DNA of 63,236 bases, filler included, from Dimorphilus gyrociliatus (Eukaryota > Animalia > Annelida), in NCBI GenBank assembly GCA_904063045.1. It is 4 parts of 4 records of this genome, joined end to end, with 100 filler letters (N's around TTAATTAATTAA, not from the genome) between each part and the next. Parts side by side here need not be neighbours in the genome. Positions count along the whole stretch, not along the records: positions 31,162 to 50,763 come from CAJFCJ010000217.1; 3 more parts are not named here. One strand, written 5' to 3'. Positions 31,162 to 50,763 of this stretch are shown here, one piece after another. Under the pieces are notes generated by a model that was not told the DNA's origin, made no database searches, and saw only the letters and a list, made by a program, of their open reading frames with translations. Positions within the stretch are counted from its first letter, which is position 1. Every line of letters begins with the position of its first letter. The position numbers were made by a program, and so were the translations under genes.

Positions 31162-31733
31162 TCTACCAAAGCTTAACTGAGAATCAATTAAATTTAGAAG
31201 TATATCTTGCCATTAAATTCCCCTTCCCTCGAACAAAGTAACTATTGGTATTCAAGTTTCTGAACTGGTTGGAATTATAGCTATTAGACTATGTTATAAA
31301 GTAACTATAATAAATTAATTAAGATCTATAAAATAAAGAAACTTTTACCTGCTATATTCATTTAAATAGTATAAAGTACTTATTTATATAATTTAAAATG
31401 TTAGTTGAAATAACCGACTTATTATTATTTATTAAGATTTAAAAAAGGGAGTAGACAAATCTTTGAAGCAGTTCATGAAATACAAAAAATGTTGAGATTA
31501 ACTTTACAAACAAAAATAGGTTAATCTTGTATTTCATAAATAATTAAAGTGTTTACCAATAAAACCAATACTATTCTATTCACTATATATGGAAATCGTA
31601 TAAAAATCACGATTATATGTTTTTAGGAACAAAGTCTAATTAAAGGAGAATCCAAATAACTAATTATTGATACATAAACTAAGAATAGCTGCTAAAAATG
31701 CAGTGATTTAACATTGTTTAGTTAATTAACCTT

Positions 31734-33176
31734 TTAATTATTATTAGACTTACTTAGAGAATTCAAAAGCTCAATCATTAGTTGTAAAGGTTTACCAGTT
31801 GATGCACTGAATACATCCTTTGTACTTGCCTCTAATGTACTACCTGCAATATCCAAATGAGCCCATGTTGTTTCACCTATAAATTCTTTTAAAAACATAG
31901 CAGCTGAACTACTCCCTGCTGTTCTCTTAGTATTAATATTAGCAAAATCGCTTACTTTTGAATCTAAATCCTTTCTAAATTGTTCGTCTAGCGGCATCCT
32001 CCATGCTTTATCATTCGCTTTTTTAGATGCTTCTTTGATCAATTCCCAGAAAACTCCACAATTACTAAAAACACCTGTATATTCATGCCCCAAAGCTATA
32101 ATAATAGCTCCAGTAAGTGTTGCGATATCAATAATCCTCTTTGGGTTAAAAGATTTAACATAGGTTATCGCATCTGCCATAATTAGACGACCTTCAGCAT
32201 CTGTATTTAGAATTTCAACAGATTTTCCTGATAATGAAACTCGAACATCACCAGGTTTGCTTGCCTTACCTGATGGCATGTTTTCACATAATGGAATAAC
32301 TGCCTTTAAATTTATAGGAATCTTGAATAAGGTTGCTGCGACAATTGATAAAAGAGATACTGCCGCACCACCCATATCTCCTTTCATGTCATACATACTA
32401 CTTGGAGGCTTTAAAGAGATTCCGCCTGAGTCAAATGTAACTCCTTTTCCAACAAGCGCTAAATCAATATCACTATTCCCATTACCTAAATAGCTTATTT
32501 CTAAGAAAACTGGCTCTTGGCCGGAGCCTTCAGTAACAGATAAAAATAATCCCATCTTTTTTTCTCTGATAAAACTCTCTGGGTGGATTTTTAGATCTAA
32601 ATCTACATTAGATTCATTTTTGGCCCATGTTATAATGTCTCTTGCATAATCTCCGAATATTTTTGGAGTACAATGATTAGCAGGAAGGTCTATAAGAAAA
32701 CGAGCAATGTTCTGAAGTTGCTTTCTAATTAGTACTTCTTTGTCAACTTCAAAGAAAAAAGTTTCAGCCTTTTTGGTTTTGAAGAAATCGAATTCGTAAC
32801 TAGCAAATACCAAACCTTCTACTAACAATTCATAGAAATGTGCATTGTTTGTGGATTTTTCAAATTTTATGTTCTTATATCCAAATTGTTTAGCCTTTCT
32901 AAATAAATTTGCACCTGTTTTTCTTATAACATCAACCTTTAATTCTTTAGTATTTGGTATAAAAGCTGCTATTACATGAAGATCATTTAATAAAACTATA
33001 GATCCATCTTTAAAGTTTGCTCCAGACTTCTTAAGAGACTTTACAATATCATCTTCATTCTTTTCTGTGAATACATTGAAGCTTTTCTCTTTTTCAGTAT
33101 ATAATAGAATTTCACAGGACTCTCCTTCTATCTTGTTATTTTTTATAAACTTTTTCCAATCTAACAGATTTGACAT
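31734..33176 (-). CDS. M17 cytosol leucyl aminopeptidase, intronless (microsporidian-type)
   Basis: GKGVTFDSGGISLK, MKGDMGGAA, NTDAEGRL, IATLTGA, WAHLDIAG; CCC motif just upstream of the ATG. Confidence 0.95.
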   Translation of the reverse strand: MSNLLDWKKFIKNNKIEGESCEILLYTEKEKSFNVFTEKNEDDIVKSLKKSGANFKDGSIVLLNDLHVIAAFIPNTKELKVDVIRKTGANLFRKAKQFGYKNIKFEKSTNNAHFYELLVEGLVFASYEFDFFKTKKAETFFFEVDKEVLIRKQLQNIARFLIDLPANHCTPKIFGDYARDIITWAKNESNVDLDLKIHPESFIREKKMGLFLSVTEGSGQEPVFLEISYLGNGNSDIDLALVGKGVTFDSGGISLKPPSSMYDMKGDMGGAAVSLLSIVAATLFKIPINLKAVIPLCENMPSGKASKPGDVRVSLSGKSVEILNTDAEGRLIMADAITYVKSFNPKRIIDIATLTGAIIIALGHEYTGVFSNCGVFWELIKEASKKANDKAWRMPLDEQFRKDLDSKVSDFANINTKRTAGSSSAAMFLKEFIGETTWAHLDIAGSTLEASTKDVFSASTGKPLQLMIELLNSLSKSNNN

Positions 33177-33565
33177 ATTAAGGGTTCAAAAAATTAAGAT
33201 TTAAGACATTTTTATTGATCTGTATTTGAATATAAAATGAATGGTTATATAACATTTTTATACTTAAACTATCTATTTTGTTTTAATAATTCTATAAAGA
33301 GCATTTTATATAGAAAATAAATTAGTAAATTGTAAAAAAAGGCTTGTTTTAAACAACCTTTACTTTTTTGGGATAGAGATTATGACGTCGTTGAATTAAA
33401 TTCTAAAACTTATAAAGTTTTGTTCAATAAAGAACGACTTTCAGAAAATGTCCATTTTATTGAATATCTTAAAAATTTGACATAGTATTCGTTTATAGTA
33501 AACATAGAAAAAATTGGTCTTTTTACACCAAATTTAATATTTATATGGTATAACATCAATATACA

Positions 33566-35036
33566 CAGTCTGTAAAACAACCCCTAACAAGAAAAATTTA
33601 TTAAAAAACTTATGAAAACAACAATTTTATATTTACATAATATCTTAAAAGAATGAACAATGGTCATGATACTAACAAGTATGATTTTGAAAAATTCTAT
33701 GATTAGCTTAAATACTTTTTATCCTAAGAAAACTTTTTAGACTGTAAAAAAAAGTGAACAGGATCAAAACTACGAACTTTCTCTCCAATATAGCATAGAT
33801 TCGATCTAATTTAGACCTTTATAACTAGAAAAATCAATGAATAAACAAAATGGAAAGCCATATTGCTTTATAAAGAGAATTTTAAATATCGAGAGATTAG
33901 TGATAAAACAGGACTAGCTCTATCAACGTCCACAAAATAATCAAAAAATATACTAATAATAATACTATAGAACATTTAAGAGGGAATGGTCGTCCATCTA
34001 AGCTATCTAATAGTATGAAACACCATTTATTAAACCTTAATAATGAAAACAGATTTTTATCAACAAGAAAGATAGCAAAAAAATACAAATATCATGTAAT
34101 ACCAATATTTCACATGCATCTGTAAAGAATTACTTAAATAAAATGAACATAGAAACCTTTACACCATGTTCTAAGCCACTCTTATAGCCAAGGCATATTA
34201 AAGCTAGATATGATGCAAGTAAGAGATGGATAAAAATGCCAGAAAGCACGTTAAAAACGATTATATTCTCCGATGAATCAAAATTTAACCTTGCTAACAA
34301 CGATGGAAGTCCAAAAGTATGGCGTACAAAGTCTTCTAAACTTGATATTCAAAATATCAAGAAAACTATAAAATTTGGAGGTGGCTCTGTGATGGTTTGG
34401 GGCTGTTTTTCATATCATGGTGTTGGAAAACTAAAATCTATAGATACAAAGATGCACGCCGCATATTATTGTAGCATTCTATCCAGCTCTTTACATAATT
34501 CTGTTGAAAAATGGGTCTTAAAGAGTATATTTTTGTACAAGACAATGACCCAAAACATACAAGCAAGCTTACAATAGAATTTTTTTTAGAAAATAATGTT
34601 AAAGTAGAACCTTGGCCAGCTCAATCACCAGACTGTAACCCTATAGAACATCTTTGGGAAATTATAAAGCGTAGAATAGGGCAGAAAACATTCAAAAAAA
34701 ATCGGACCTGAAAGAAGCTATAACTAAAGAATGGAATTCAATATCAATAGAGACATGTAGAAAACTAGCTTTAAACTTTAAAAAATCCGCACTAATGGTA
34801 TATAGAGCAAAAGACGGGTATATTAATAAATAATTTTTCTTGTTCACTTTTTTTTTTACAGTCAAAAAAGTTTTTTGAGATAAAAAGTATTTAAGCTGAT
34901 CATAGAATTTTTCAAAATCATATTTGTTAGTATCATGACAATTGTTTATTCTTCTAAGATATTATGTAAATATAAAATTGTTGTTTTCATAAGTTTTTTA
35001 ATAAACTTTCCTTATTCACTTTTTTTTTACAGACTG
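33566..35036 (+). mobile_element. Full-length Tc1 (DD34E) element with ~195-bp IR/DR-type TIRs; transposase disrupted
   Basis: TIRs 33566-33760 and 34841-35036 beginning CAGTCTGTAAAA, with an inner repeat (G)ACTGTAAAAAAAAGTGAA; [33 protein letters not shown] on the right, CA on the left. Confidence 0.92.
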
Positions 35037-35383
35037 TATATATACAATTTACCAAAAAAGCGATACTATTAAATTTTCGTTATAGACTTAGAAAAAAAAA
35101 AGATTCATTAAGAAAATAGCATGATTACCATCTACTTGAATATGTATAAGTTCTTTTTGCTGCATTATTTTCACTTGAAAGTCGTTTTTTTAATCTGTAT
35201 TCTTAAAAAACAACTTTGATTTTGAAAAATAATACTACTATTTTTTATTAATATACTTTGAGTTCGTTTTATATATGGGAGGGTCGATCAACTTGAGATA
35301 AAATAAATACAAATTTTAAATTTTATTCTTTCTTATTTCCCTCCACATAACTATAAAAGTTTTTGACTCATTTATACCCTATT

Positions 35384-35492
35384 ATGGTAGTAGTAACATC
35401 TAATACCAAACGATCGACAAAGGCTGTTTCTTCCGATGATAGACAGAAGATCATTGTGAAAGTTCTCGATGGGATGTCGGCCAAGGCGATAT
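35384..35492 (+). mobile_element. N-terminal HTH fragment of an IS630/Tc1-like transposase running into a gap
   Basis: MVVVTSNTKRSTKAVSSDDRQKIIVKVLDGMSAKAI; CCC at 35377-35379 before the ATG. Confidence 0.5.
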
Positions 35493-35643
35493 NNNNNNNN
35501 NNNNNNNNNNNNNNNNNNNNNNNNNNNNNNNNNNNNNNNNNNNNNNNNNNNNNNNNNNNNNNNNNNNNNNNNNNNNNNNNNNNNNNNNNNNNNNNNNNNN
35601 NNNNNNNNNNNNNNNNNNNNNNNNNNNNNNNNNNNNNNNNNNN
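35493..35643. other. Scaffold gap (151 N) within contig B
   Basis: Run of N without linker. Confidence 1.
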
Positions 35644-37257
35644 TGTTAAGCTTTGTAAAGCTCCTAGGCCATCAACATACTTAAAAATTGTAGGTTCTAT
35701 TTTTGGAGAGTTAATTTCTAAAGTTTGTAGATTCACAAGCTTATTGACAAGTTTTAAATTCTCAACCATTCCATAAAGTGATAAGTCTTGTAATGTTTGT
35801 ATTTTAATTATCTTTTTTAAGAATTCTGAGGTATAAACATTAAACTTCAATTTTAATGTTTCAAGAACGGGCAGAGATATAATCTGTGACAAGGTATTTG
35901 AGCTACATTCATAACCACCACTTATCTCTAAATATTTTAAACTTTTAGAATTTGCAATTCCTCTACACACAATGCTCTCCATATTCTTCATTTTAATAAT
36001 TAATTTCAACTTAACCAATTTAGTAAATCTTGTAATATCGATTGGATAGTTGTAAAATAAATGCTCTACATTATCAATTTCAAGTTCTTCTATGTTTGGT
36101 GTACATGATTGAACTAAATTAATTCTTTCTATTTTACCATTTCTTAATGTAAGTCTTTTTAAAAACTTCAACCTAACAACCAATTCTCTAAAGTTGCTTA
36201 ATAAAAATGCTCTCTTTATCTCTAAATCCAACACTTTAAGGTAGGTAATAGACGTAATATGATGAATGAATTTCACATTTAGTATTCCAGACGGCTGATC
36301 AATCGTTAATTCTGATAAATCCTTATTGTTTGTTACTTTAGTGAGCTCTGATAACGAAGGAATATTTAATCCTTTCACATTTAATTTATTAAGGTAAACA
36401 TTTTGGTTGTTTATAAACGATAATGTGGTCTTAAATTGTGCATTTTCAAGGAATAATTCTTCGATGCTTTTTACAGTCAAAAGTAATTCTTGAATGTTAT
36501 CTGGTATATAACAAGATTCTAAATCTAAAGATTTTATAAATAATTCATTAAATATAAATGTTATGATTTTAAAAACGTTAATAACTGTACGCTGTTCTCC
36601 GAATTGTTTTAAAAATACACTTCTTGAAACTTTAAAGTGATAATTTTGTTCTCCTTTTAATAATTCAGTATTGTTGCATCTCTTGCCTGTATTAATTACG
36701 AAAATAGTTTCTAGAAGATCATTTTCTTTTCTTTCAATTGAAATATCATATAAATTTAAATATCCATTTAATAACGATATAAGGTAATGTTTAACTTGAC
36801 AAGAATGTATACTTAGCTTAGTTTTAAAACAACTAAAGAATAACTTTCCAATATTTTCACAGAATAAAACCATATATTCATCATATAAAAGTAGTTCATC
36901 TGCTAAAATAACTAATTTTTGTAGTGTTAGGATATTATTTGACGGATTTAGAATAATAGAATTTTCTAGTTCCAATACGTTATTTTCTATTATAGACATC
37001 ATTAGATTAAATGTATCTCTTTCTATTTCAGAATTAATTATTTCATTGAAGTCAAAAGAACAGTTATTCTTTGGAATATAAAATCTTGATAGAATCTCTG
37101 ATTTTTGAAATATAGTAACATCACTACAGTCATATTTTATTTTGCCAACTGTAAATTCGTTATAATAACCACAATCATTATTTTTAAATATTATCTCAAC
37201 AATATTGGTTTTAATAAAACAGAACAAAATAATCAATAATATGTTAAATACTTTCAT
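35644..37257 (-). CDS. Signal-peptide LRR protein (microsporidian-type expanded family); 3' end lost in gap
   Basis: MKVFNILLIILFCFIKT signal; LxxLxL repeats (LKYLEISG, LETLKLKF, LQDLSLYG, LQTLEINS); no introns; CCC directly before the ATG. Confidence 0.85.
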
Positions 37258-37776
37258 AAGGGCTCATTAGTCTTTCGGTATATAAAAGTTTTTTTCTGAT
37301 TAATATTCCATTTTAGTAATTTTTAAAAAATATTTAATTTGGAAATAAAAAGAATTTTTATTCCTCTTTGCTATAAAAATTTGTTTTTAAAATCTCCTCT
37401 AAATGTCAAATTTTTGATGTTTTGAAAAATTTTAAAAATTGTTGAACTTCTATAAATGTTTAATTAGATCAAGAAAAAAACTTATTTCCTTATTTATATA
37501 AGATAGTTTATTGATATAAATAAAAAAAAAGGTATAAAAATAGTTCAATTCTTCTGTTTTCAACAATCTTATTATTTAAGCTGATCAATGAAATTTAGTA
37601 AATCCTAAAAAAAGAATTAATAGCACTTTTTTCTATAATAACAGATTGAATAAGAGAATAAACTATTGTTATGATAATTTATAATACTCGTTAATTATAT
37701 GTTTTATTCTAGACTTTGATAAAATTCTATTTTTAGAATTAATTTACGTATTAAAATGAATATAAAAAACAAATTA

Positions 37777-39686
37777 TGTTGTATACCAATAGGGTTCCTG
37801 ATTCCTTAGAATTCCTACCAAATTACCAAAAATTTTCAAAAATTTACTATTTTAACCCCTATTTTGCGTTTTTCTACGTATAACATTAAGGTTCCTACCA
37901 ACTTACCATGATATTTTTTTCAATAAATAGAAATTTTTGTTTAATTTTTTTCTTTAGCACTGATTCATTAGGATTCCACTAATTTAAAGAAATATTAAAA
38001 AATCTATTTTAATATAAAAACAACAGTTTTAGATGTCTAAAACAAGATTATACTATAGAAATAGTATTGATATGCGTTTTATTAAAATCAAAAGTAGCAA
38101 AATATTTATTTTTTAATTATATCAAACTTGAGAAATTATTGTCCATAATGGTAAAATAAATTAAAAATAACTCGATTGAAGAACGAGACCATTAAGTAGG
38201 ATGCTTAACTAATAGTACAATCCCTAATTTAACCGACAAGACTAAAAGAGCAACTTTTTTAAAGAAGATTAAATATTTAAGATATGTTAATTGCGAAATA
38301 TTTTATACTATTGGTGGTTTAAATAAAGAGGAATTCCTTCTTATGAATTTCTAAAAATAACCTAAATAATACATAGAGCTCATGGCGATGGTCATTCTGG
38401 AGTCACATCGATCAGAAATAGCCTGAGTCAATCATATCTTGGTACAAAGAGTGATGAAATACGAAATTTTGTTTCATCTTGTGAAAAGTACAGCAGAACA
38501 AAAGAACAATGAAGTAAGTACAATCACTAGTATCGTACCAGATTATTTTAGACAGAGAATAATGGTGGATTTAGTTGATTTGTCAAAGTATAGATCAGAC
38601 AATGATGGTTATAGATACCTATTTAATTTCATAAAGACATTTAGCAAATTTACCTTTTCTTTCTTGCAAAAGAGTAAAGTGCAGCAACTTTCAAAGAAAT
38701 TTCAATGATTTTCTCCATAGTGAAGATAAATTTGATATTTTACATTCAGATAACGGAAGAGAGTTTGTAAACCAGGAAGTGGTACCGATATATAGTGAAT
38801 GGGGGGATTGAGATAATTCATGGAAAACCTAGGCATCCTCGATCTCAAGGAAAGACCGAGCGTTTTAGTAGTACTTTGAAAGAATAGATAAGAAGTTCGT
38901 TATGAAATAAAAAACAATAGATATATAGATAGATTAAAAAAACTTTTATTCGAATATAATAACTCACAACACGGAGCTGCTAAATACACTCCTTTTTTCA
39001 TTTATAAAGGAGCGATAAACACACTTAATATTTCAATAATAGAGGCTAACTTGGAAAAAAGTAATATTAGAAACCATATAATACATTTGTTTATGAACAT
39101 AATAATAGAATTAATCAGAGACAAGTGGTTGCAGGGGAAACAGTATTACTATCTAAACACTTTGACATGAATATTGAAACATGAAGAAACACGTTGGAAT
39201 CATTATATTATCGAGAAATATATACTTTAGTAACATTGAAAGACAACGTTGCTTCAATTGTGTGTGAAGAGGTAGAGAAATTTGTTCATGTTAACAGATT
39301 AAAAAGATATATTTCTCGAAATAACCAAAATTAAAACTTTTATTTATAATAATATCTTACTACTTTTAATTTTAATAAAACGTATATCAATACTATTTCT
39401 ATAATATACTCTTGTTTTATGTATCTAAAACTGTTATTTTTTTATTAAAATAGAATTTTTAAAATTTCTTTTAAATTAGTGTAATCTTAATGAATCAGTG
39501 TTGAAGAAAAAAAAATTTTAACTAAAAATTCCTATTTGTTGAAAAAAATATCATGGTAAATTGGTAGGAATCCTAATGGTATACGTAGAAAAACACAAAA
39601 TAGGGGCTAAAATAATAAATTTTTGAAAATTTTATGGTAATTTGGTAGGAATCCTAATGAATCAGGAACCCTATTGGTATACAACA
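37777..39686 (+). mobile_element. Ginger-like DNA transposon: Gypsy-type integrase between ~320-bp TIRs; ORF degraded
   Basis: TIRs 37777-38097 and 39360-39686 with TGTTGTATACC...GGTATACAACA ends; HGDGHSG zinc finger, RQRIMVDLVDLS, HSDNGREF, HPRSQGKTER. Flanks ATTA and GCTA are not a perfect 4-bp TSD. Confidence 0.85.
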
Positions 39687-39898
39687 GCTATTAATTAGAA
39701 TTGTAAATTTTATTAAATCAAAATAAATTTCTTGTCTTTTGCTAGGTTTGGTTATTTAACTTTTTTTAAAAAAATAAAGAATAATCAATTATTCGTAATA
39801 AGAACATTCAGAAATTTTATATTATTGTTAACCAATCAAAGAAGGGTTAAGCTATTAAGGAGTATATCAAAAATAAATATTTTTAAATTTCCCCTTTT

Positions 39899-41690
39899 AT
39901 GAAAAGTTACAAAAGATGTTTGTTCTTGTTCTTTATATTTGTTATAAGTTTATAGAATGTACTCAGAACAACTCAATAATAGAATTAACGTTCAGTGATA
40001 ATGAAAAACAGAGCTTAAAAAAATTTTCAAAAATTTTATTCAGTCTTATGGAAAAACTAGATATCTTTTTTTTTTAAATTTGATGAATCTACGACTAACA
40101 GTATATTCAAATCTAATATAAAAGCTTATGGAGCAATTGATAGTATATTAGATGATACAGATAAACTAACTAAACTTAGAGATATAATGGTAGGATTTTC
40201 TAAGAAATTAGAATTAAAGAACAAGACAACATTTTTAAGATAAAAGATTATGTTAGTCTAATGTTATATGATTACATGGTAAAAGATAAAGAGTATTCAG
40301 TGGAAGAGATAGAAAGCATTATAGAAACAGCTAAATCATACATAAATGAAGTCTTAGAGCGTCCTTTAAAGAGTTTAAAGCGTGTTTATACGCTAAAAAA
40401 ATTACAATCATTGGATTTATCAAGTTGTAATCTTAAGGATGATAGTTTAGGTGGATTAGATGGTCTGGAGAATATTAGAATATTAACTATATCAGGTAAT
40501 AAAGATATAACCAAAAAAGGATTTGATAAGCTATCTGTTCTTAAACATCTCGAATGTGTATTTTTGTATAGGTGTAATATTCAAGGGAATGGAGATCTAG
40601 AAGTGTTAGGGGAACTACCTAACCTCCAGAAACTCTTTTTTGACTTTAGTAAAAACATGAATAGTAGTAATATTGACTCAATCTGCAAAGCTACTCAGTT
40701 AACGGACTTAGTGTTGACTAATTGTGATCTGAAAGGTGATATACTAAAAAATAGACTAAAAAATCTAAAAAAATAGAAGCTTTAGATATTTCTCTTACTG
40801 AAAATGCAGATAAAGAATTACTTGAAGAAATTTTTGATAATCTCACGCAACTCAAAGATTTAAATATATCATTTTGTGTTGATATAAAACCAGGATCATT
40901 TGAATTAATACATAATCTAAAAATTAGTAAGTTTAAACGTAAAACATATAAAAAATCTCAATGAAGCAGATTTATCAAATATATTTAATCTGAAAATGCT
41001 TGAGTCTCTTAATTTATCTTACTGTGAACTAAAAATGGGATCTTTAAAAGGAATAGAAAAGATAGAAGATTTAACAGAACTGTACGCAAGCAAAACGAGA
41101 TTTCCAAGGATGATACAGATTCTTTATTTGAACTAGAAAAGTTAGAGATTTTGAAAATGGATGACTGCGAGTTTGCAGAAGGCAGTTTAAAAGATATAAA
41201 AAATTTAAAAAAGTTAAAGTTTTATATTTGAATTCGTGCACAGCCATAGGAAGTGAAGAAATAAAGAAATATCACAACTAAGTAAACTAGAAGAACTAGA
41301 GATAATTTCATGTGAACTCAAAGCTGGGGTCTTAAGCAATGGGTCGGAGCATTAAATAATCTAAGAAAACTTAGTATTAGATTCAACACAAACCTTTCAA
41401 ATAGTGATATGTCAGAAATTTTCAATTTAAAGAATCTAGAACATCTTTCAATGCTTGGATGTGATTTAAATTCTAATCAACTCATAGGAATTCATTCACT
41501 TGAAAAGCTAAGAATCTTAGAAATATCAGGCAATCAAAGTCTAACTAAACAAGACTATATAGGAATTATTAAACTACCCAACCTATACAGATTATATGTT
41601 GATGAATATTTTTATTCTATAATGGTATAGAAGACATAAAAAACGAACTTAAAGAAAGACGGATTCTTAAATAGATACACATATAAATCA
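39899..41690 (+). pseudogene. Signal-peptide LRR gene, frameshifted
   Basis: MKSYKRCLFLFFIFVISL start after CCCC; LRR ORFs 40261-40776 and 41409-41630 joined by shifted LRR fragments. Confidence 0.8.
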
Positions 41691-42152
41691 TGGCTTAAAA
41701 CAAACTTTTAGGTCGATAATTAAAAGAATTATCTATACCTTTTAAAATATAAAGTTGCTTTTTACTCCTTTTAATACAGTTATTCCTACGTCTTTTTAGG
41801 CTTAATACACTATTCTCTATGTATGTGGCATATATATAAAAATCCAAGTTAAATAGCGTATTGAGGAAATTTACATTTTTTCGAAATTAAAATGTCCTTT
41901 GTATTGGCTATCTTTATTATAAATGAAATATTTAAATATAATATTTTATTTATAACCCTCTGCACTTTAACCAAAAACAGGAATTTTTGAAAAGTTAACT
42001 TGAGTAATTAAACAAGATGATTAAATTTACAAAAAGTAAATATTATATAATAGCGATAGATTCTATAAAAAGACTGGAATTTATTACTTTATAACAAAAT
42101 AGAGAGAATCTCTTCAAATAAAGATATAAACATAACTTATCATACCCTTATT

Positions 42153-43087
42153 ATGGGAAGACATTGACCTGACCATGAAAAAAGTGAGACTTTCGACTTA
42201 AAATAAGTTGTGTTCTCGTTGAAGAAAATAGGATAAAATGTCAACGAATCAACTTCAACGATATGATTATTTTTTAAAACTTTTTTTGAGAGAAATGGTA
42301 TTGGGATAAAGCTTTTTCCTGGTCGGAAAGCAGTTGAATACCTGTTCAACTACTAAAACCAAGAATTTGGTGATGTCAGGTCAAAAAAACGTAGCTAAAC
42401 TCCTGTAGATACTTCCCCAATGACAATTAGAAGAAGTCTAAATTAAATTGAAATGTTTGAAAGAGTGTCAGCAATCCTCCTTTTTTGGCTATAACTCCAA
42501 AATTATTATATTAAATTAGGTATATAAAAATTTAAAATAGATTAAAGTAATTCGGAGTGATGAAAGTCAATTTAAGGTTTTTGAATCTGATGGAAGACAA
42601 TATGTATGGAGATAAATTTAAACCCTGCTTCTTAGTTCAAAGGCAGAACTATTATGGACGAGAAAATTTTATGGTAAAACCATTTGAAAAGCGTTTTTGT
42701 TTATCTAAAATTTAATTCTGCAGACTATATAGATCTTATTAATAAGAATTTGTATGACTACATATTAAATAAAAGTGATTCACGGTACATTTTCCAACAG
42801 GATAATACACCACTTCATGCTTGCATAAAAAGTATAGATTCTTTTAAAGAAGAAAGTTGAATTGATGAACTGGCCACCAATGCCCCCAGATTTAAATCCG
42901 ATGGAGAATATATGGGTCATAAAAATCAAAATATTAAAATATACACAAAAAGAACATGAAAGAACTAAAGGCTATAATAGAGAAAGTTTGAAGAGAAATC
43001 CCCATTTTTTTGAAAAAATTAATCGATGGTATTCATAATAGATGTTTAGATGTTAGTAGGGAGAATAACAGCCATATTAGATTATAG
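42153..43087 (+). mobile_element. Heavily degraded Tc1 transposase
   Basis: SDESQFKVFESDGRQYVW, FQQDNTPLH, WPPMPPDLNPMENIW; CCC before the ATG. Confidence 0.8.
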
Positions 43088-45099
43088 CTAAGCAACTAAC
43101 GGTAACTCTAGTTATTTTATTGATTGATTTTCCATCAAAACAACCTATACCTCCCTTATTGAATAAACCCTTCCCAATATTTACATTAACTTAAGAACTT
43201 TTAATTTATCTTTGGTTTTTTGTATATTCATCAAAGAGCATCAAAATAAAAACTTAGTTTTTTGAATACTAGTGTATATAAACTAATTTTATGCATTAGA
43301 GTTGTTCATTAATTAAAGATAGGATGATTAGCCTGAAAACAGGATCCATACATACTAATAAACCTCAAGAATAAAATTCAGTTTATAAAATATCAGCAGA
43401 GAACGCTAAACTTTAAAAATACAATACGAATTAGCCTAAATTTGAATCTAACAGACCTCAGACTTTGATACAAAACTTTATCAATAATTAAATATTTATG
43501 AAAAATGATAGAATGATCTCTAGTCATAAAATAATTGTAAATTTAAAAACTAACACCAAAGTGCCTATTCTCATAGGATAATTAGAGGTGTTCTCACAAG
43601 AAAAGAGGCTAAGACTTTTATAGGAGTGAAAAATTCTATTCATTTAAAAGGTGCTGAAAATTGCTGAAAATTATCCTTATTTAGGGGAAACATTGGAAAA
43701 GAGATGCTTTTTAATAATAAAACGACATTTTTTTATTATAAAAACTCTATTAAATGCTGTATTTAGTAGAATTTAATAGTAAGAGACTGTTTTAGCTCTA
43801 AAGGTCTACAAAGGTTAAATTTTGCTGATGTAGTTATAGATGCAATATAGTATATAGGTAAGCTAATTGGTATTTTACAATCGACAGGAGAAAGGTTTGG
43901 AGTAAAACCCCCAAACGAGCCTATTACCAATGTTTATATGTTAGAATAGACACAAACTTCTTCTTTTTCTGCTGCTTTATCGTGTAAATATATTTTTTTA
44001 TTTACTGATTGAAAACAAGAGTCAAAAAGCATATATTTCTGAAATGATATAATAAGCTATGTATTTTAACGAATAAGAGGGGGATAAAATGGGTGCTCAA
44101 AATAAAAGATACAAAATTCTTTATTATTTTCAAACTTTCACCTTCTGTTACCATATCATAGATAATAGATTTTCTCTATTAATATGTTGGAGAAAACAAT
44201 CCTAAAAAATGAGATTTAACTATAAATAAACATTTAAGATGTAGACTAAGAACAGTGTATATAATAGTTTTTTAATTCGTCCTTATTTCATTGTTATTGA
44301 CTTAATTATATTCTTATACATACTGTATTTACAACACGAAATCATTTATAAAAGATATATGGGCAACACGAAGTTCATATATCTGACGTTAAACTGATTT
44401 ATATTATAATTAAATATAAAATCATCAATTGAACGAGACTTGAAGACATATAGACTTAAAATTATATGTTTAGATGGGGTGTATGTGCTTTATATCATAT
44501 AAAAATCTAAATTAAGTATTTGCGGAAATAGCAGTTTAACGTCATCTTTGTAATTTTGCCTATAGTATTAAATTTTAGCTATAAAAAATAGATTTAGTAA
44601 AAATATTGAGTATAAAAATTCCAGAATTAGAATATATCCTAAACCATTTTTTATTATGGATTCTTTATATTACAAATTTTTTATGTTATAAAAAAGGTTA
44701 AAGGCCGCGTGTTAAAGATAAATAAGAATTTAGAACCGGCCTTTATGTTTAAAAATACATTTATTTTAATTTTTTTGTCTATAATTAAGTTTATTAATTC
44801 TATTAGAAACAATAATATTTCATCACAATTACCTAAATATAAAAATCATAAATAATATGGCTTAGAAAGACTATCTAAAAAATATATTCAACCTTATGAA
44901 GATTATGGAATATCCCCCCTATTTTTAGTACACAAATGACTACAGGAAAATTTAAGTACACAGCTAAAATTTATAGTGCAACAGATACTACATTATATGA
45001 TATAGACAAACTAACTAAACTAATAAAATGAACATTTTTTCCCAGAGTTTAACTAAGTCTGATATAAAAAAATTCTAACAGTAAAAACTTGGTCAACTA

Positions 45100-46520
45100 A
45101 AAATTATATGATTTAATGATAAAAGATGAAGGATTCTAACCAGAAGGGATTAGAAGAATAATTAGACTCGTTATATTTTACATTAAAGAAGCCAATAAAC
45201 GCTAGAATACGAATTTTAGGCGTATACTACAAATGTCATGTCTTGAAATTTTTCGATTATCGAACTTAGTCTTACAGATTATAATTTATATTGACTTTAG
45301 GATCTTCAAAGTTTGAAAACACTGGATATATCAGGTAATATAAGTATAACTAAAAGGAGGCTTGGTGATTTATCTAATTTTAGATGTCTTGAAAATTTTA
45401 TACTCAATTAGCAAAATTTAATCATCTCAAAGTTTTAGATTTAAGATAAGGGGATCTTAATGCTGATAGTCTTGATTCTATTTCTAATGCTACTAAATTA
45501 TTAAAATTAAAGTTATAATATTGTAATTTAAAGGGCGAGATATTAAAAACAGACTAAGGAAGTTTAAAAGTTTAGAGAAAGTGTATTTTTTAAATACTTG
45601 AGAATTGATAAAGAGTTATCGATAGAGATTCTCTGAAAATCTCACAGAACTTAAATATTTTAACTTGTTTTGATATCTGAAGGCTTTGGTTTAATTTATA
45701 AGCTCTATGATTAAAAACTTTAAACTTAAACGGCACCAAAAATATTCCAAAGGATAATTTAGGGTATATAATCCAATTAAAGGATTTTGAACACCTCGAC
45801 TTGCCCTTTTGTAATTTAGAAGTTTGTTCAACATATTGAGTGCGAAAATTAGAATCTTTAACAATATTAAAGCATGATTATAATAGATTTTAAAACAAGG
45901 CACAACCTTAATTTTCGAACTAAAAAAACTGAGAATTTTAAAATTTACTAATAACCAACTTGGGAAAGACAATTTAAGAAGTATTTTAAATTTAGTAAAA
46001 TTATGAGAATTATGCCTAGAAAAGTGTACAGATCTTAGTAGGAATAAAATGAGAGAAATATCACAGCTAAGGTAAGGTAGCTTAAAAACTCCCTATCTTC
46101 ATATGATCTTAAACCTGGAGTTTTATGTAGCGGATTGCCCAAGCTAAATGGAATGGAACAGCTTTTTGTAAACAACAATCTAAGTCTTGACCAAAGTGAT
46201 ATTTTAGAGATTTTAAGTCTAAAAAATTCTTAAAATTGGGGTTGTTTAACTTCGGTGCTGGTGTGTTTAGCTATATAAAAGTAAAGTTTTATAACAGCGA
46301 AAAATTATATATAGAGAGAATCAAGAGTCTAATAAAAAAGAGATGGAAGAGATTTTTTAAAGGAATTCCAAGACTAAAGAAATTAAAGAAATTAATAATA
46401 ATAATGAATAAGAAATTAGTAAATTGCCTATATTAAAAAAATTACTTGTTGATCATTCATTTTATCTAAAAGGTGTTGTGGTAGAAATAATAAACAAACT
46501 GAATAGAAAAAGAGTACAGC
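45100..46520 (+). pseudogene. LRR pseudogene paralogous to 39899-41690
   Basis: LKTLDISGN, SISNATKLLKL..YCNLKGEILKNRL versus SICKATQLTDLVLTNCDLKGDILKNRL. Boundaries approximate. Confidence 0.7.
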
Positions 46521-47199
46521 ACGATGAACTGGCTGTTAATAAATTGAATGTAATAAATTGAATGTTATATCTTATAAGAAATTTGTCTCTCTTGTTTTTA
46601 AATCTTTACTAAAAAAGAAAGACTTACAGTGATTAAAAACTTTACTAACAAAATGCTTTTTATTGACAAAATAAGTAGTAAATTCTACTCCATAGCATCT
46701 TTAATAACCTTTAAATATTGTAAAGTTTTAAAAGACTGATATAATGAAAAAATATTTTTATATCTTTTGACAGTTACAGGAAATTTAAAATCAAAGAATT
46801 TGGTAGTAGGTGGTTAGGTATTAAAAAACAGTCTTAAATAAAAAAAAGTGTATTCTGCAATTATAATAGTTAGGTAGAAAGGATTTTTAAATATGAAATC
46901 GGACAATTAAGCTTGCTTTACAGTAAAACTACAAAATGAATTTTTTAATATCTAGAATAACAAAATCCAGTTGGAGCCACATAAAATATGCATTAAACTA
47001 GTAGTAATATAATAAACATCAGCCTTTATAGCTATATTAATTATTATTTATTTCTAGAGAAGAAATTCTTTTCCAGAAGTTTTTGACAGATGCGATTTTT
47101 TGAAACAGAAAAATATATTTAGCATGGTTTAAATTTGAGCATATAGTAAATTTCCCCAAAATATTCTTATAACCAATGTTTTTATTATCAATAATGTAA

Positions 47200-47883
47200 T
47201 AGAGGGACTAAATAGTTCTTCGTATACATTAAACAGCAAATAAAAATTACACAGTAAATAAAAATTATACAACAAATAAAGATAATTATTTAGAAATGGA
47301 TAATCAGTAATATTGAAATTTAAAGTACAAATATCTTCTCGTGATATTTAAATAGAAAAGACTTAAAAAGCAACTATAGAATACCTAATACAAGTATACC
47401 TTTAAAGCTCATTTATGATAAAAATATATTCTTTTTTAGTAGGTCGTTAAATTTCAGTTTAAAGTGAGATTTTTTATGTTCTTCAATCCTTTCTGAGATT
47501 TTAGTGCTGTTACTTCCTATGATGGATTATATAAATTAAAAAAACTTTGAATTACATTAAATTTCAAAATAAATTCCTAGATTTATCTAACATCATGTAT
47601 TTTTAAAAACTAAAACAACTGTCTATTATCTAATACAAAGCATCCTATCTCAGTATAAGATCAGATGTAGAGTTAATAAAAAATAATGTATTCTTATTTT
47701 TGGCCTCAAATAGTCATTTAATTTACTCGTCAACAAATATAAAGGCTATTGAACTAATTGGAATCCGTTTACTTTTAAAACTATTAAAAATTTGACTTCC
47801 CAGACTCAAAAATGTTTATAAAAGCATATTAAGTCAAATTAGTATAGAAAGTATCATTATACTTACTTTTGATATCAATAAGA
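47200..47883 (+). pseudogene. Further LRR-gene remnant interrupted by Tc1
   Basis: Scattered LxxLxI fragments near 47580-47640 in shifting frames. Boundaries approximate. Confidence 0.3.
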
Positions 47884-47885
47884 TA

Positions 47886-49384
47886 CAGTTGGGGACAAAA
47901 AAAATGGCTCAAACATAAAACTCCTAAAAACTAGATTATTTGTTTTTTTCAGTTAAAACTCATTTAGTGGAGTTATACTCAATTGGTATAATAAACATTA
48001 ATTCATAATTGTAATTTTTATTAAATGTTTATTAAATAGTTTTTTCTATAATTTTATATTTTTCTTTCAATGATGGGACAAAAAAAATGGCTCAAAATTT
48101 TTTTTTTCAAACCTGACAAGTTTCCCTCCATATTAGTATAAAAAATCGCAAAAACATAATCCCTTTATGGGTAAACACTATGATAAAATCACTATAGGTA
48201 AGATAATTGGGTATTTTGATAATAATTTAAATCAGAGAGAAATAAGTAAGAAGTTGGGTATACCACAAAAAACTATATCAAATATACTCAAAAGAGAGTC
48301 TAATGGACAGGGAGTAATAGAAAAATAGGCTCAGGGCGACCCAAACTTCTTTGCTATCAAGATTTTAACATTATAAAGAAATCACTAAAAAAATTCACTT
48401 ATTTCAGTTCCAAAAATAACTAAAATCTTATCAGAAGAAAGGAATATTAGCCATAGTACCAAAACAGTAAGTCGTTTTTTGAAAGATCAAGATTATATAG
48501 CTAAAACATCTATCAAAAAACCTTTTTTGAGCCCTTTACACAAATTAAAAGATTTGACCAGGCGAAAAATTGGCTATTTAATGGAAAAGAATAGTGGAAT
48601 GACGTGATTTTTAGCGATGAAGCTTCATTTTCTCTTTTAAATGATGCGGGAGCTTTTAAAGTCTGGCAAAACAATACAACAGCGCCTTTTATTAATTAAA
48701 CTAAAAAATTCAGTTTTAAAAAGTTAATGGTATGGGGGTGTATGTCATATAATGGTGTGGGTATATTAGAATTTATTAATGGTACAATGGACGCCCCTTA
48801 TTATGTATCTATTCCAGCTTCGAATCTTCCTGCCAGCCTGAGAAAAACGGGACTTTCTACTTTTAAATTTCAGCAGGATAATGATCCTAAGCACAAAAGT
48901 GCACTAGCCATGGAATATTTTGAACAAAAGGATATTGAAGTTCTACCGTGTGTTCTCAAAGTCCTGACTGAATCTTATAGAAACAATTTGGGCTATTATG
49001 AAGCATCGTCTGAGAGGAAAATCGTTTCCCGATTTGAACTCTTTAAAGAGGAATTAACATCAATTTGGAACTCAATACCTCATGAAACATGTAGAAAATT
49101 AGTAGAAGGAATGCCAAACAGGCTTAAAGATGTGATAAGAAGCAAAGGAGGCCATATATCTTATTAAAAAACTTTGAGCCATTTTTTTTGTCCCATCACT
49201 GAAAGAAAAATATAAAATTATAAAAAAAACTATTTAATAAACGTTTAATAAAAAATTAAAATTATGGATTAATGTTTATTATACTAATTGAGTATGACTC
49301 CACTAAATGAGTTTTAACTGAAAAAGATAAATAATCTAGTTTTTGGGAGTTTTATGTTTGAGCCATTTTTTTTGTCCCCAACTG
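47886..49384 (+). mobile_element. Full-length Tc1 element with ~210-bp IR/DR TIRs and TA target duplication; transposase disrupted
   Basis: TA|CAGTTGGGGACAAAAAAAATGGCTCAAA...TTTGAGCCATTTTTTTTGTCCCCAACTG|TA; inner repeats at ~48075-48096 and ~49173-49194; FSDEASF, VMVWG, QQDNDPKH. Confidence 0.95.
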
Positions 49385-49397
49385 TAAATGTTACTTT

Positions 49398-50763
49398 TGT
49401 TGTATATCAAAGTGTTGGTTGTATCATTGTGTTACATACTAAATTACCATAAAATTTACAATTTTTTATTATTTTAACCCCTTTTTTTCAAAAACCCTTG
49501 TGTATCATTGTGTTGCACTAAAATTAATAGGATTTTTTTTTCAATAAATAGGAAATTTTACTACAAATTTTTTTTTTGTCACCACTTGTATCATTGTGTT
49601 GCAGTAATTTAATAGGGAATTTTTTATACTAATTTAATAGGAAAAATAAAGAATATTTAGGTATTTAAAAATTTAATACTAAACCCTATAAATGGCCAGA
49701 AATATAACAATAGAAACAGTTGAAGAAAGAGATAGCATTGTGTCTTACTTGTTATCCGGAACTGTTCCTTCTTTTAATAATAGGTCTCTGACAAACTCCT
49801 TTTTAAGAAAAACTAGACATTTGAGTTATTCAGAAGGTAAGATTTTCTATATCAAAAATAACGAAAGAAAGGAAATCATATGTATGTTTGACTCAGAAAA
49901 AAAGGAGAATATATTAAAGATGGTTCACAGGAATGGACATTCTGGTATTGTTTCAATGAGGAATACGATTAGTAGATCATATCTAGGTATAAAAACGACT
50001 GATATATCAACATTCGTTTCTCATTGTGATACATGTCATGTAACACCAGAATCGTCCATAATAATAGCATCATTTCGTCAATTATCCCTGATTACTTCAG
50101 GCAACGTATAATGATAGACCTCGTTGACCTGTCCATATATAGAAGAGAAAATGACAATTTTAGATACATTTTCAACTTTATTGAAACATTTAGCAAGTTT
50201 GCGTTCTCTTATCCGGCAAAGGATAAACAGCAGAAACATTCTCAAAAATATTAGAAACCTTTCTTTTTAAAGAAGGTAAATTTGATATTATACACACTGA
50301 TAATGGGAGGGAGTTTGTAAACTCTAGAGTGTATAGCTTGTGTAGGTCTTGGGGAATAGATTTGATACATGGACACCCAAGACATCCCCAGAGCCAGGGG
50401 CAAATAGAAAGGATCAATAGGACTATCAAGACTAAAATCAAGAAATCTCTTACACAACAAAGTAATAGATGGATCGATAATTTAGATGTATTGTTATATG
50501 AATATGACAATTCTCAGCATAGGGCTACCAAGCATACTCCTTTTTACATATATAAAGGTGCATTAAATAATCCTACTAACTTAAACATACAAAAAATTAC
50601 AGAAATGAATAATATTAGAAGTGAAATTATAAATTATGCAGCAAAATTTGTTGATGAGCATAACGCTAGAATAAATCAATCTCGGCTGGTTATAGGCGAT
50701 ACTGTGCTTTTATCCAAAGATTTTGATATGAATGTAAGGACCAGAAGACACTTATTTAGTAAT
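49398..50763 (+). mobile_element. Second Ginger-like integrase element (left end + DD35E integrase), truncated by contig end
   Basis: Starts TGTTGTATA; TGTATCATTGTGTT at 49420, 49501 and 49587; HRNGH...CDTC zinc finger; IDLVD, HTDNGREF...QGQIE (35 residues D to E); two frameshifts (~50045, ~50225). Confidence 0.85.

Follow-up and report, generated by a model that had tools for sequence, protein, structure and literature searches.

A probable microsporidian genome piece with an M17 aminopeptidase gene and decayed DNA transposons in the Dimorphilus gyrociliatus assembly

The stretch described here covers positions 31162-50763 of the window, where the window denotes the whole DNA of 63,236 nucleotides that was joined from records of the Dimorphilus gyrociliatus assembly GCA_904063045.1. 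It comes from record CAJFCJ010000217.1 and carries an M17 leucyl aminopeptidase gene, leucine-rich repeat (LRR) loci, and decayed DNA transposons, which are listed in Table 1. The stretch is very probably a piece of the genome of a microsporidian parasite that has no close sequenced relative. A microsporidian origin is favoured because of the phylogeny of the aminopeptidase, the CCC motif before the gene starts, the intronless gene with its 20-nt 3' untranslated region (UTR), the matching GC content, and the sparse layout that is rich in transposable elements (TEs). A Hamiltosporidium-like microsporidian had been proposed in the first-pass annotation from AT richness, the absence of introns, a eukaryote-type M17 aminopeptidase, CCC motifs before ATGs, and tandem signal-peptide LRR genes.

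The aminopeptidase is encoded by an uninterrupted open reading frame (ORF) of 480 aa. The ORF matches Pfam PF00883 Peptidase_M17 (E=4.5e-110, 368 bits against a cut-off of 25) over profile positions 1-309 of 310. The aminopeptidase N-terminal domain Peptidase_M17_N is also matched, slightly over its cut-off (25.4 bits against 23.4). The nearest solved structure is the bovine lens leucine aminopeptidase (LAP; E=6e-90), and bacterial PepA and Plasmodium M17 rank below it. These matches bear out the assignment to a eukaryote-type M17 aminopeptidase. In the alignment with the aminopeptidase relatives (A1), the motifs for catalysis and metal binding (VGKG-TFDSGG, MKGDMGG, and NTDAEGRL) are invariant, and the invariant columns include K244, D249, K256, D267, D326, E328, and R330. 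We take these residues to correspond to the ligands of bovine LAP by the family motifs and not by structural superposition. The enzyme looks functional from its sequence because the Lys, Asp, Glu, and Arg positions of the family motifs are invariant.

The relatives of the aminopeptidase were searched among 5.8 billion proteins. Among named proteins, the best matches belong to Astathelohania contejeani, at 46% identity, and to Hamiltosporidium tvaerminnensis, at 48%. A Nematocida major match follows lower in the list, and many animal proteins reach up to ~44-45% identity. The identity to named microsporidia ranges from 37% to 48%. Two unnamed fragments are far closer, which are P0001 (99% protein identity, from JGI 3300018733) and P0002 (72%, from the Logan assembly of ERR1712080). 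A profile search that was built from microsporidian aminopeptidases returned no microsporidian members beyond those already found, and few sequenced microsporidia seem to have kept the gene. No record identical in sequence to the aminopeptidase was returned by an exact look-up. The scan of JGI metagenomes with the aminopeptidase returned only distant relatives and none from the organism of the window; the identity of their best-aligned segments is 32-42% for most of them and reaches 47% on short fragments, and they come mostly from soil or groundwater contigs that look bacterial.

Two trees of the aminopeptidase were constructed, a careful tree of 34 sequences (IQ-TREE, LG+C20+F+G4) and a quick tree of 39 sequences, both composed without rozellid or metchnikovellid sequences. 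In the careful tree, the window sequence and P0002 are sister to a group of Astathelohania, Hamiltosporidium, Nematocida, and three environmental sequences, with ultrafast bootstrap (UFBoot) support of 91 and Shimodaira-Hasegawa-like approximate likelihood ratio test (SH-aLRT) support of 82. The quick tree concurs with the microsporidian grouping (SH-aLRT 94). A grouping of the aminopeptidase with animals, bacteria, or amoebozoans had been set beforehand as the refutation of a microsporidian origin, and no such grouping was observed. The careful tree puts animals, dictyostelid amoebozoans, and bacteria each in a clade apart (100/100 in every case). The constraint that places the window lineage within animals costs 27.7 log-likelihood units (lnL) and is rejected by the approximately unbiased (AU) test (p=0.012). 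Placing the lineage beside Astathelohania and Hamiltosporidium lowers the likelihood by 0.6 lnL, and the AU test does not reject this constraint (p=0.47). As the former constraint is rejected and the latter is tolerated, the gene is, on this alignment, of microsporidian type without a settled place inside the phylum, and its basal position is not robust. The microsporidian part of the first-pass proposal thus stood, through the aminopeptidase clade (91/82) and the CCC motif, but its Hamiltosporidium-like part was not established since the lineage falls outside the group of Astathelohania, Hamiltosporidium, and Nematocida in the best tree, with nesting not rejected.

The three environmental aminopeptidases (P0005, P0012, and P0051) are unnamed sequences inside the microsporidian clade, and two of them stand beside Nematocida. 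They probably mark more unsequenced microsporidia in public read sets.

The aminopeptidase gene is also represented by transcripts. The metatranscriptome contig L001 (JGI 3300018733, Ga0193036_1003620) has 1,361 nt and shares 97.4% identity with the window. Its colinear part of 1,357 nt starts inside the coding sequence and reaches window position 31714, after which L001 continues with a run of A in place of the caatgtt of the genome. Since L001 is polyadenylated and colinear with the gene, there is no intron in the covered 1,357 nt and the 3' UTR is 20 nt long. The claimed absence of introns therefore holds for the aminopeptidase, which is the one gene tested. The 3' UTR of one gene of E. cuniculi has been measured at 16 nt (PMC2803860). 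L001 and the window gene differ by 22 synonymous and 8 nonsynonymous substitutions, and L001 demonstrates expression of the aminopeptidase gene in a conspecific or sibling organism. The second transcript L002 (Logan ERR1712080_29998) has 70% DNA identity to the window and also carries a poly(A) tail soon after the stop codon. The presence of L001 at 97.4% and L002 at 70% in two metatranscriptome records therefore indicates that at least two related species of the window lineage are active in the sampled environments. JGI 3300018733 and ERR1712080 are probably Tara Oceans plankton metatranscriptomes; the literature search for the sample identifiers 3300018733 and ERR1712080 found no paper naming either of them.

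The CCC motif before start codons has been described for Microsporidia and is conserved across other microsporidia (Peyretaillade et al., PMC2803860). In the stretch, CCC is found at most 15 nt upstream of the ATG in 6/6 recognisable ORF starts, against 25/601 for all ATGs (4.2%; binomial 5e-9), which bears out the CCC motifs claimed from the first reading. In these six ORFs, which are the aminopeptidase, LRR1, the LRR2 pseudogene, the element D integrase, and two Tc1 transposases, 2-5 nt separate the motif from the ATG. The orthologues of the aminopeptidase share this arrangement, which reads TGAACCCTTAATATG in the window, TGAACCCTAAAAATG in Astathelohania (L003), and CAAACCCCATG in Hamiltosporidium (L004), and is also present in L002.

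The composition of the stretch agrees with the claimed AT richness. The 19,451 read bases have a GC content of 26.7% (local range 20-34%) and are interrupted by one gap of 151 N. The GC content of the Astathelohania contig is 28.3% and that of the Hamiltosporidium contig is 27.1%. These contigs are just as gene-sparse, with 2-4 genes per 14-17 kb. Only two long ORFs are present in the stretch, the 480-aa ORF at 31734-33176 (-) and a minus-strand ORF that starts from 37257 and enters the gap at 35643, and the remainder consists of short and broken ORFs. The tRNA scan and the Rfam scan of 31162-50763 returned zero tRNAs and zero Rfam families. The tetranucleotide profiles to the left and right of the gap (r=0.67) are the closest pair among the sequences tested, the CCC-type gene starts and composition are alike on either side of the gap, and no host-like segment was found anywhere in the 19.6 kb.

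Microsporidia are obligate intracellular parasites. The stretch would be nuclear DNA of a microsporidian that was sequenced together with another organism, and its source region would be gene-sparse and transposon-laden, presumably in a genome of the 'large-genome' type. It holds one working housekeeping gene, the M17 aminopeptidase, which has a CCC-type start signal and gives an unspliced transcript that is polyadenylated 20 nt after the stop codon. LRR1 may be a lineage-specific and probably secreted LRR-like protein, a candidate host-interaction factor such as other microsporidia have in expanded families, and beside it are two dead LRR paralogues. At least six inactivated DNA transposons, four Tc1/mariner and two Ginger-like elements, complete the region, and their ORF starts have acquired the CCC signal of the parasite.

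Several points weigh against a microsporidian origin. The placement comes from a single protein whose branch is long (1.38 substitutions per site), the microsporidian clade is moderately supported (91/82), and fast-evolving sequences may have been drawn together by long-branch attraction. The piece contains no microsporidian hallmark gene (rRNA, polar tube protein, spore wall protein, or nucleotide transporter), and no relative of LRR1 was detected in any microsporidian by the word-index and phmmer searches. Transposons move between microsporidia and animals, and the transposons are therefore of little taxonomic weight. The source may instead be an AT-rich opisthokont or protist that is close to canonical Microsporidia without belonging to them (such as a rozellid, a 'short-branch' microsporidian, or a metchnikovellid-like organism), where the grouping would reflect shared ancestry or fast evolution. 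Both trees branch the window lineage outside the group of Nematocida and Hamiltosporidium/Astathelohania, and the identity to named microsporidia is just 37-48%, as this explanation would have it. It is nevertheless judged unlikely, as canonical microsporidia likewise have the CCC motif, genes without introns, a very short 3' UTR, and such TE and LRR content, and the basal position yields at a cost of 0.6 lnL to the joining of Astathelohania and Hamiltosporidium (AU p=0.47).

The location of the contig within the host assembly raises the question of integration, by which microsporidian-derived DNA would have entered the host nuclear genome through horizontal transfer with no living parasite. 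The gap and the piece edges leave an internal join and one end unresolved, and the content consists mostly of dead genes and dead transposons. We nevertheless consider integration very improbable because there is no host-like segment in the 19.6 kb and both the composition and the CCC starts are uniform across the sides of the gap. The aminopeptidase is moreover intact with conserved catalytic motifs and 22 synonymous against 8 nonsynonymous differences to the transcript, L001 is polyadenylated right after the stop codon, and the 70%-identical sister transcript in another sample fits a free-living parasite lineage. Ordinary host (animal) DNA or bacterial contamination would agree with the bovine lens aminopeptidase as the closest structure and with the many animal proteins that are 44-45% identical. 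Such a source is extremely improbable, as the animal clade forms at 100/100 without the window sequence (AU p=0.012), the bacteria are split off by a 100/100 branch, and the stretch combines a polyadenylated transcript, eukaryotic transposon types (Tc1 and gypsy-type integrase), and the absence of introns at 26.7% GC. We infer that the contig is free parasite genome and not an insertion in the host. The parasite is plausibly undescribed, as judged from protein identity, because no named protein exceeds 48% identity to the aminopeptidase. A more detailed reading is offered only tentatively and may well not hold in full, namely an undescribed marine microsporidian lineage without a close sequenced relative, possibly outside Nematocida and Hamiltosporidium/Astathelohania, that is transcribed in ocean plankton, has at least two species-level relatives, and carries Ginger-like elements.

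The second long ORF belongs to LRR1, which remains open over at least 538 aa. The N-terminus of LRR1 is hydrophobic and reads MKVFNILLIILFCFIKTNIV, and it is followed by a region of ~230 aa without a match and then by a putative, divergent LRR half. The match to Pfam LRR_14 is sub-threshold (E=2.8e-5, 23.5 bits against a cut-off of 40). The exhaustive phmmer search of 1.84 billion representatives returned 13 weak matches (best E=1.1e-6) that cover residues 228-537 only, and 9/9 of those checked are LRR proteins; the word-index protein search returned no match. In the ESM Atlas, LRR1 meets only generic LRR/BTB clusters under 0.9. The single-sequence AlphaFold2 model is unusable (predicted local distance difference test score, pLDDT, 37), and the count of a simple LRR regular expression in the Leu/Ile-rich LRR1 is not above that in shuffles. 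LRR2 begins with a hydrophobic start (MKSYKRCLFLFFIFVISL) that meets a stop after 18 codons, and at least 6 frame changes follow with LRR repeats across three frames; its fragment at 40261-40776 passes Pfam LRR_4 (28.9 bits against a cut-off of 27). LRR2 and LRR3 have a DNA repeat in common (40121-40176 and 44966-45021, 80%). The breaks in both are more likely to be true decay than sequencing error because the aminopeptidase and LRR1 stay open over 1.4-1.6 kb. BLAST of LRR1 against the LRR2 and LRR3 loci found no similarity. The tandem signal-peptide LRR genes of the first-pass annotation are therefore upheld in part: LRR1 is open with a hydrophobic N-terminus and LRR2 passes LRR_4, but LRR2 and LRR3 are frameshifted, and LRR1 lies on the opposite strand without BLAST similarity to them, so the three loci are not a tandem array.

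The assembly gap separates two genes on opposite strands. A 629-aa ORF that runs across the gap (35368-37257) was rejected as one gene, as its left side holds the start of a plus-strand Tc1-like transposase and its right side the minus-strand LRR1. This ORF and the plus-strand ORFs at 35363-35776 and 35469-35684 are artefacts that were read through N. A transposon may have truncated LRR1 at its 3' end; alternatively, the true length of the gap may exceed the nominal 151 bases.

The Tc1/mariner elements exhibit DDE_3 transposases, terminal inverted repeats (TIRs), TA target duplication, and CAGT-type termini, and all of their transposases are broken with no active member. The TIRs of element A are ~190 nt long (33559-33753 and 34850-35043), are 84-89% complementary, and have the termini TA + ACAGTCTGT. 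Its DDE_3 match lies at 34511-34711 (E=6.9e-10) in a transposase that is interrupted by stops. Element E begins its ORF with CCC-N4-ATG at 35384 and reads as a Sleeping-Beauty/Tc1 helix-turn-helix (HTH), which HTH_SB matches weakly (E=0.05). Short segments upstream of this ORF match the TIRs of element A. Element B has TIRs of 220 nt (47884-48103 and 49166-49386) that are 95-96% complementary and of the inverted repeat-direct repeat (IR-DR) type, as in Sleeping-Beauty-like elements, and its termini read TA|CAGTTGGGG at both ends. The exact 22-mer GGGACAAAAAAAATGGCTCAAA is present twice in each TIR of element B (47892-47913, 48075-48096, 49173-49194, and 49357-49378). The HTH ORF of element B starts from CCC-N3-ATG at 48167, and its DDE region lies at 48604-49167.

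Both Ginger-like elements, C and D, carry as their sole gene a gypsy-type integrase (H2C2 finger and D-D-E core) with its own ATG. Element C has TIRs of ~330 nt (37777-38113 and 39351-39686) that are 84-89% complementary with TGTTG termini, and its region 38148-39190 resembles the integrase of copy D. Element C also has an rve_3 match. The integrase of element D starts from CCC-N5-ATG at 49692 and has two frameshifts, with matches to Integrase_H2C2 (E=1.2e-7) and rve_3 (E=1.1e-4), and its TIR, likewise of ~330 nt with a TGTTG end, is similar to that of copy C. Ginger elements have this architecture, with a gypsy-type integrase as the one ORF and TIRs with TGTNR termini on both sides of it. The flanks of copy C read AAATTA and GCTATT and show no target-site duplication, which is weak evidence as the copy is old. 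The elements are therefore named Ginger-like and not filed as Ginger.

The transposon ORFs at 35384, 48167, and 49692 (+) begin with CCC-N3-5-ATG as cellular genes do, which suggests that the transposons are long-term residents adapted to the transcription signals of the parasite and not recent arrivals from the host. Element D starts 11 nt after the right end of element B (49386-49398), and elements A and E abut at ~35043-35090. These positions therefore point to transposon pile-ups in this region, by nested or adjacent insertions.

Table 1. Features located in positions 31162-50763 of the window.
Feature	Position	Strand	Basis
Poly(A) addition site ~31714 and 20-nt 3' UTR of the aminopeptidase gene	31714..31733	-	L001 alignment
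M17 leucyl (cytosol) aminopeptidase, intact, intronless, 480 aa	31734..33176	-	ORF and Pfam
CCC motif, 5 nt upstream of the aminopeptidase ATG	33182..33184	-	sequence gaaCCCttaatATG
Element A, decayed Tc1/mariner, ~1.5 kb	33559..35043	+	TIRs, DDE_3
Element E, further Tc1-like start, transposase N-terminus from ATG 35384 into the gap	35044..35492	+	HTH_SB, TIR matches
Assembly gap between two genes on opposite strands	35493..35643	.	ORF reading of both sides
LRR1, ORF open over at least 538 aa, with the 3' end missing at the gap	35644..37257	-	ORF, LRR_14, phmmer
CCC motif, 2 nt before the LRR1 ATG	37260-37262	-	sequence
Element C, Ginger-like, decayed gypsy-type integrase	37777..39686	+	TIRs, integrase similarity
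LRR2 pseudogene, CCCC-N4-ATG start	39899..41630	+	three-frame reading, LRR_4
Third Tc1/mariner transposase fragment	42557..43038	+	tblastn to element A transposase, DDE_3 (E=0.0039), ORFs
LRR3 pseudogene, LRR2 paralogue, heavily frameshifted	~44960..46440	+	tblastn 45104-45569, three-frame reading
Element B, Tc1, 1.5 kb, broken transposase	47884..49386	+	TIRs, HTH, DDE
Element D, Ginger-like, left TIR and integrase ORF, stopped by the piece edge	49398..50763	+	Pfam, TIR similarity

The finding is very probably a parasite that was carried along in the assembly of another organism and not a new kind of biology. The current understanding of microsporidian biology is unchanged by it, and its value is that of a contamination flag and a pointer to an unsequenced, probably marine lineage. 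The contig and the contigs of its coverage and k-mer bin should leave the host assembly, or else the aminopeptidase and transposons of the parasite will be annotated as those of the host. The contig flags the infection of the sequenced specimen by a microsporidian without a close sequenced relative whose transcripts are also present in environmental metatranscriptomes. Recovery of the remaining genome from these reads would give a further lineage to a phylum with poorly sampled marine diversity, and would reveal whether Ginger-like elements and genomes that are gene-sparse and TE-rich occur more widely in it.

The closest known counterparts are contigs of the large-genome, TE-rich microsporidia Hamiltosporidium tvaerminnensis and Astathelohania contejeani (PITK01000485.1 and SBIQ01000130.1), which share with the stretch an orthologous M17 gene, CCC before the ATG, and a GC content of 27-28%. 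Unlike a close relative, the stretch has only 46-48% protein identity to them and is not nested with them in the best tree, although such nesting is not rejected. No matches were found by tblastn of the TE and LRR ORFs of the window against the Astathelohania and Hamiltosporidium contigs, and no synteny or common transposons were found between them.

An expansion of LRR proteins has been reported in Spraguea lophii, where 97 ORFs include many with signal peptides and some possible pseudogenes, and an LRR family has also been described in Trachipleistophora hominis (PMC3749934). Several of the window copies likewise have hydrophobic signal-like N-termini and include pseudogenes, whereas the window LRRs have no homology beyond generic LRR and only one open copy. 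Tc1/mariner elements are documented in the microsporidia Anncaliia and Nosema (PMC4202319). The window elements resemble them in the DDE_3 transposase, TA target, CAGT termini, and long TIRs, but differ in that every copy is inactivated. Ginger elements are DNA transposons with a gypsy-type integrase and TIRs with TGTNR termini (Bao, Kapitonov and Jurka 2010, PMC2836005), and their target-site duplications are 4-bp CCGG/CCGT or 6-bp RTATAY (PMC2836005). The window elements share with Ginger the sole H2C2 and DDE integrase, the TIRs that end in TGTNR, and the absence of reverse transcriptase. They differ from Ginger in length (~1.9 kb against 2.6-7 kb), in TIR length (~330 nt against 40-270 nt for Ginger1), and in that both copies are decayed with no matching target-site duplication visible. 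The survey of microsporidian TEs lists Tc1/mariner, Merlin, piggyBac, and LTR (long terminal repeat) elements but not Ginger (PMC4202319), and the searchable literature yielded neither a report of Ginger from Microsporidia nor a paper that pairs 'Ginger2' with microsporidia. The recovery of microsporidian genomes as cobionts from host sequencing is now routine (PMC12558613). The text of that study has no marine, annelid, or mollusc hosts, whereas the closest relatives of the window are two metatranscriptome contigs that probably come from ocean plankton. Both cases concern parasite contigs in host data that are recognisable by their GC content, coverage, and protein matches.

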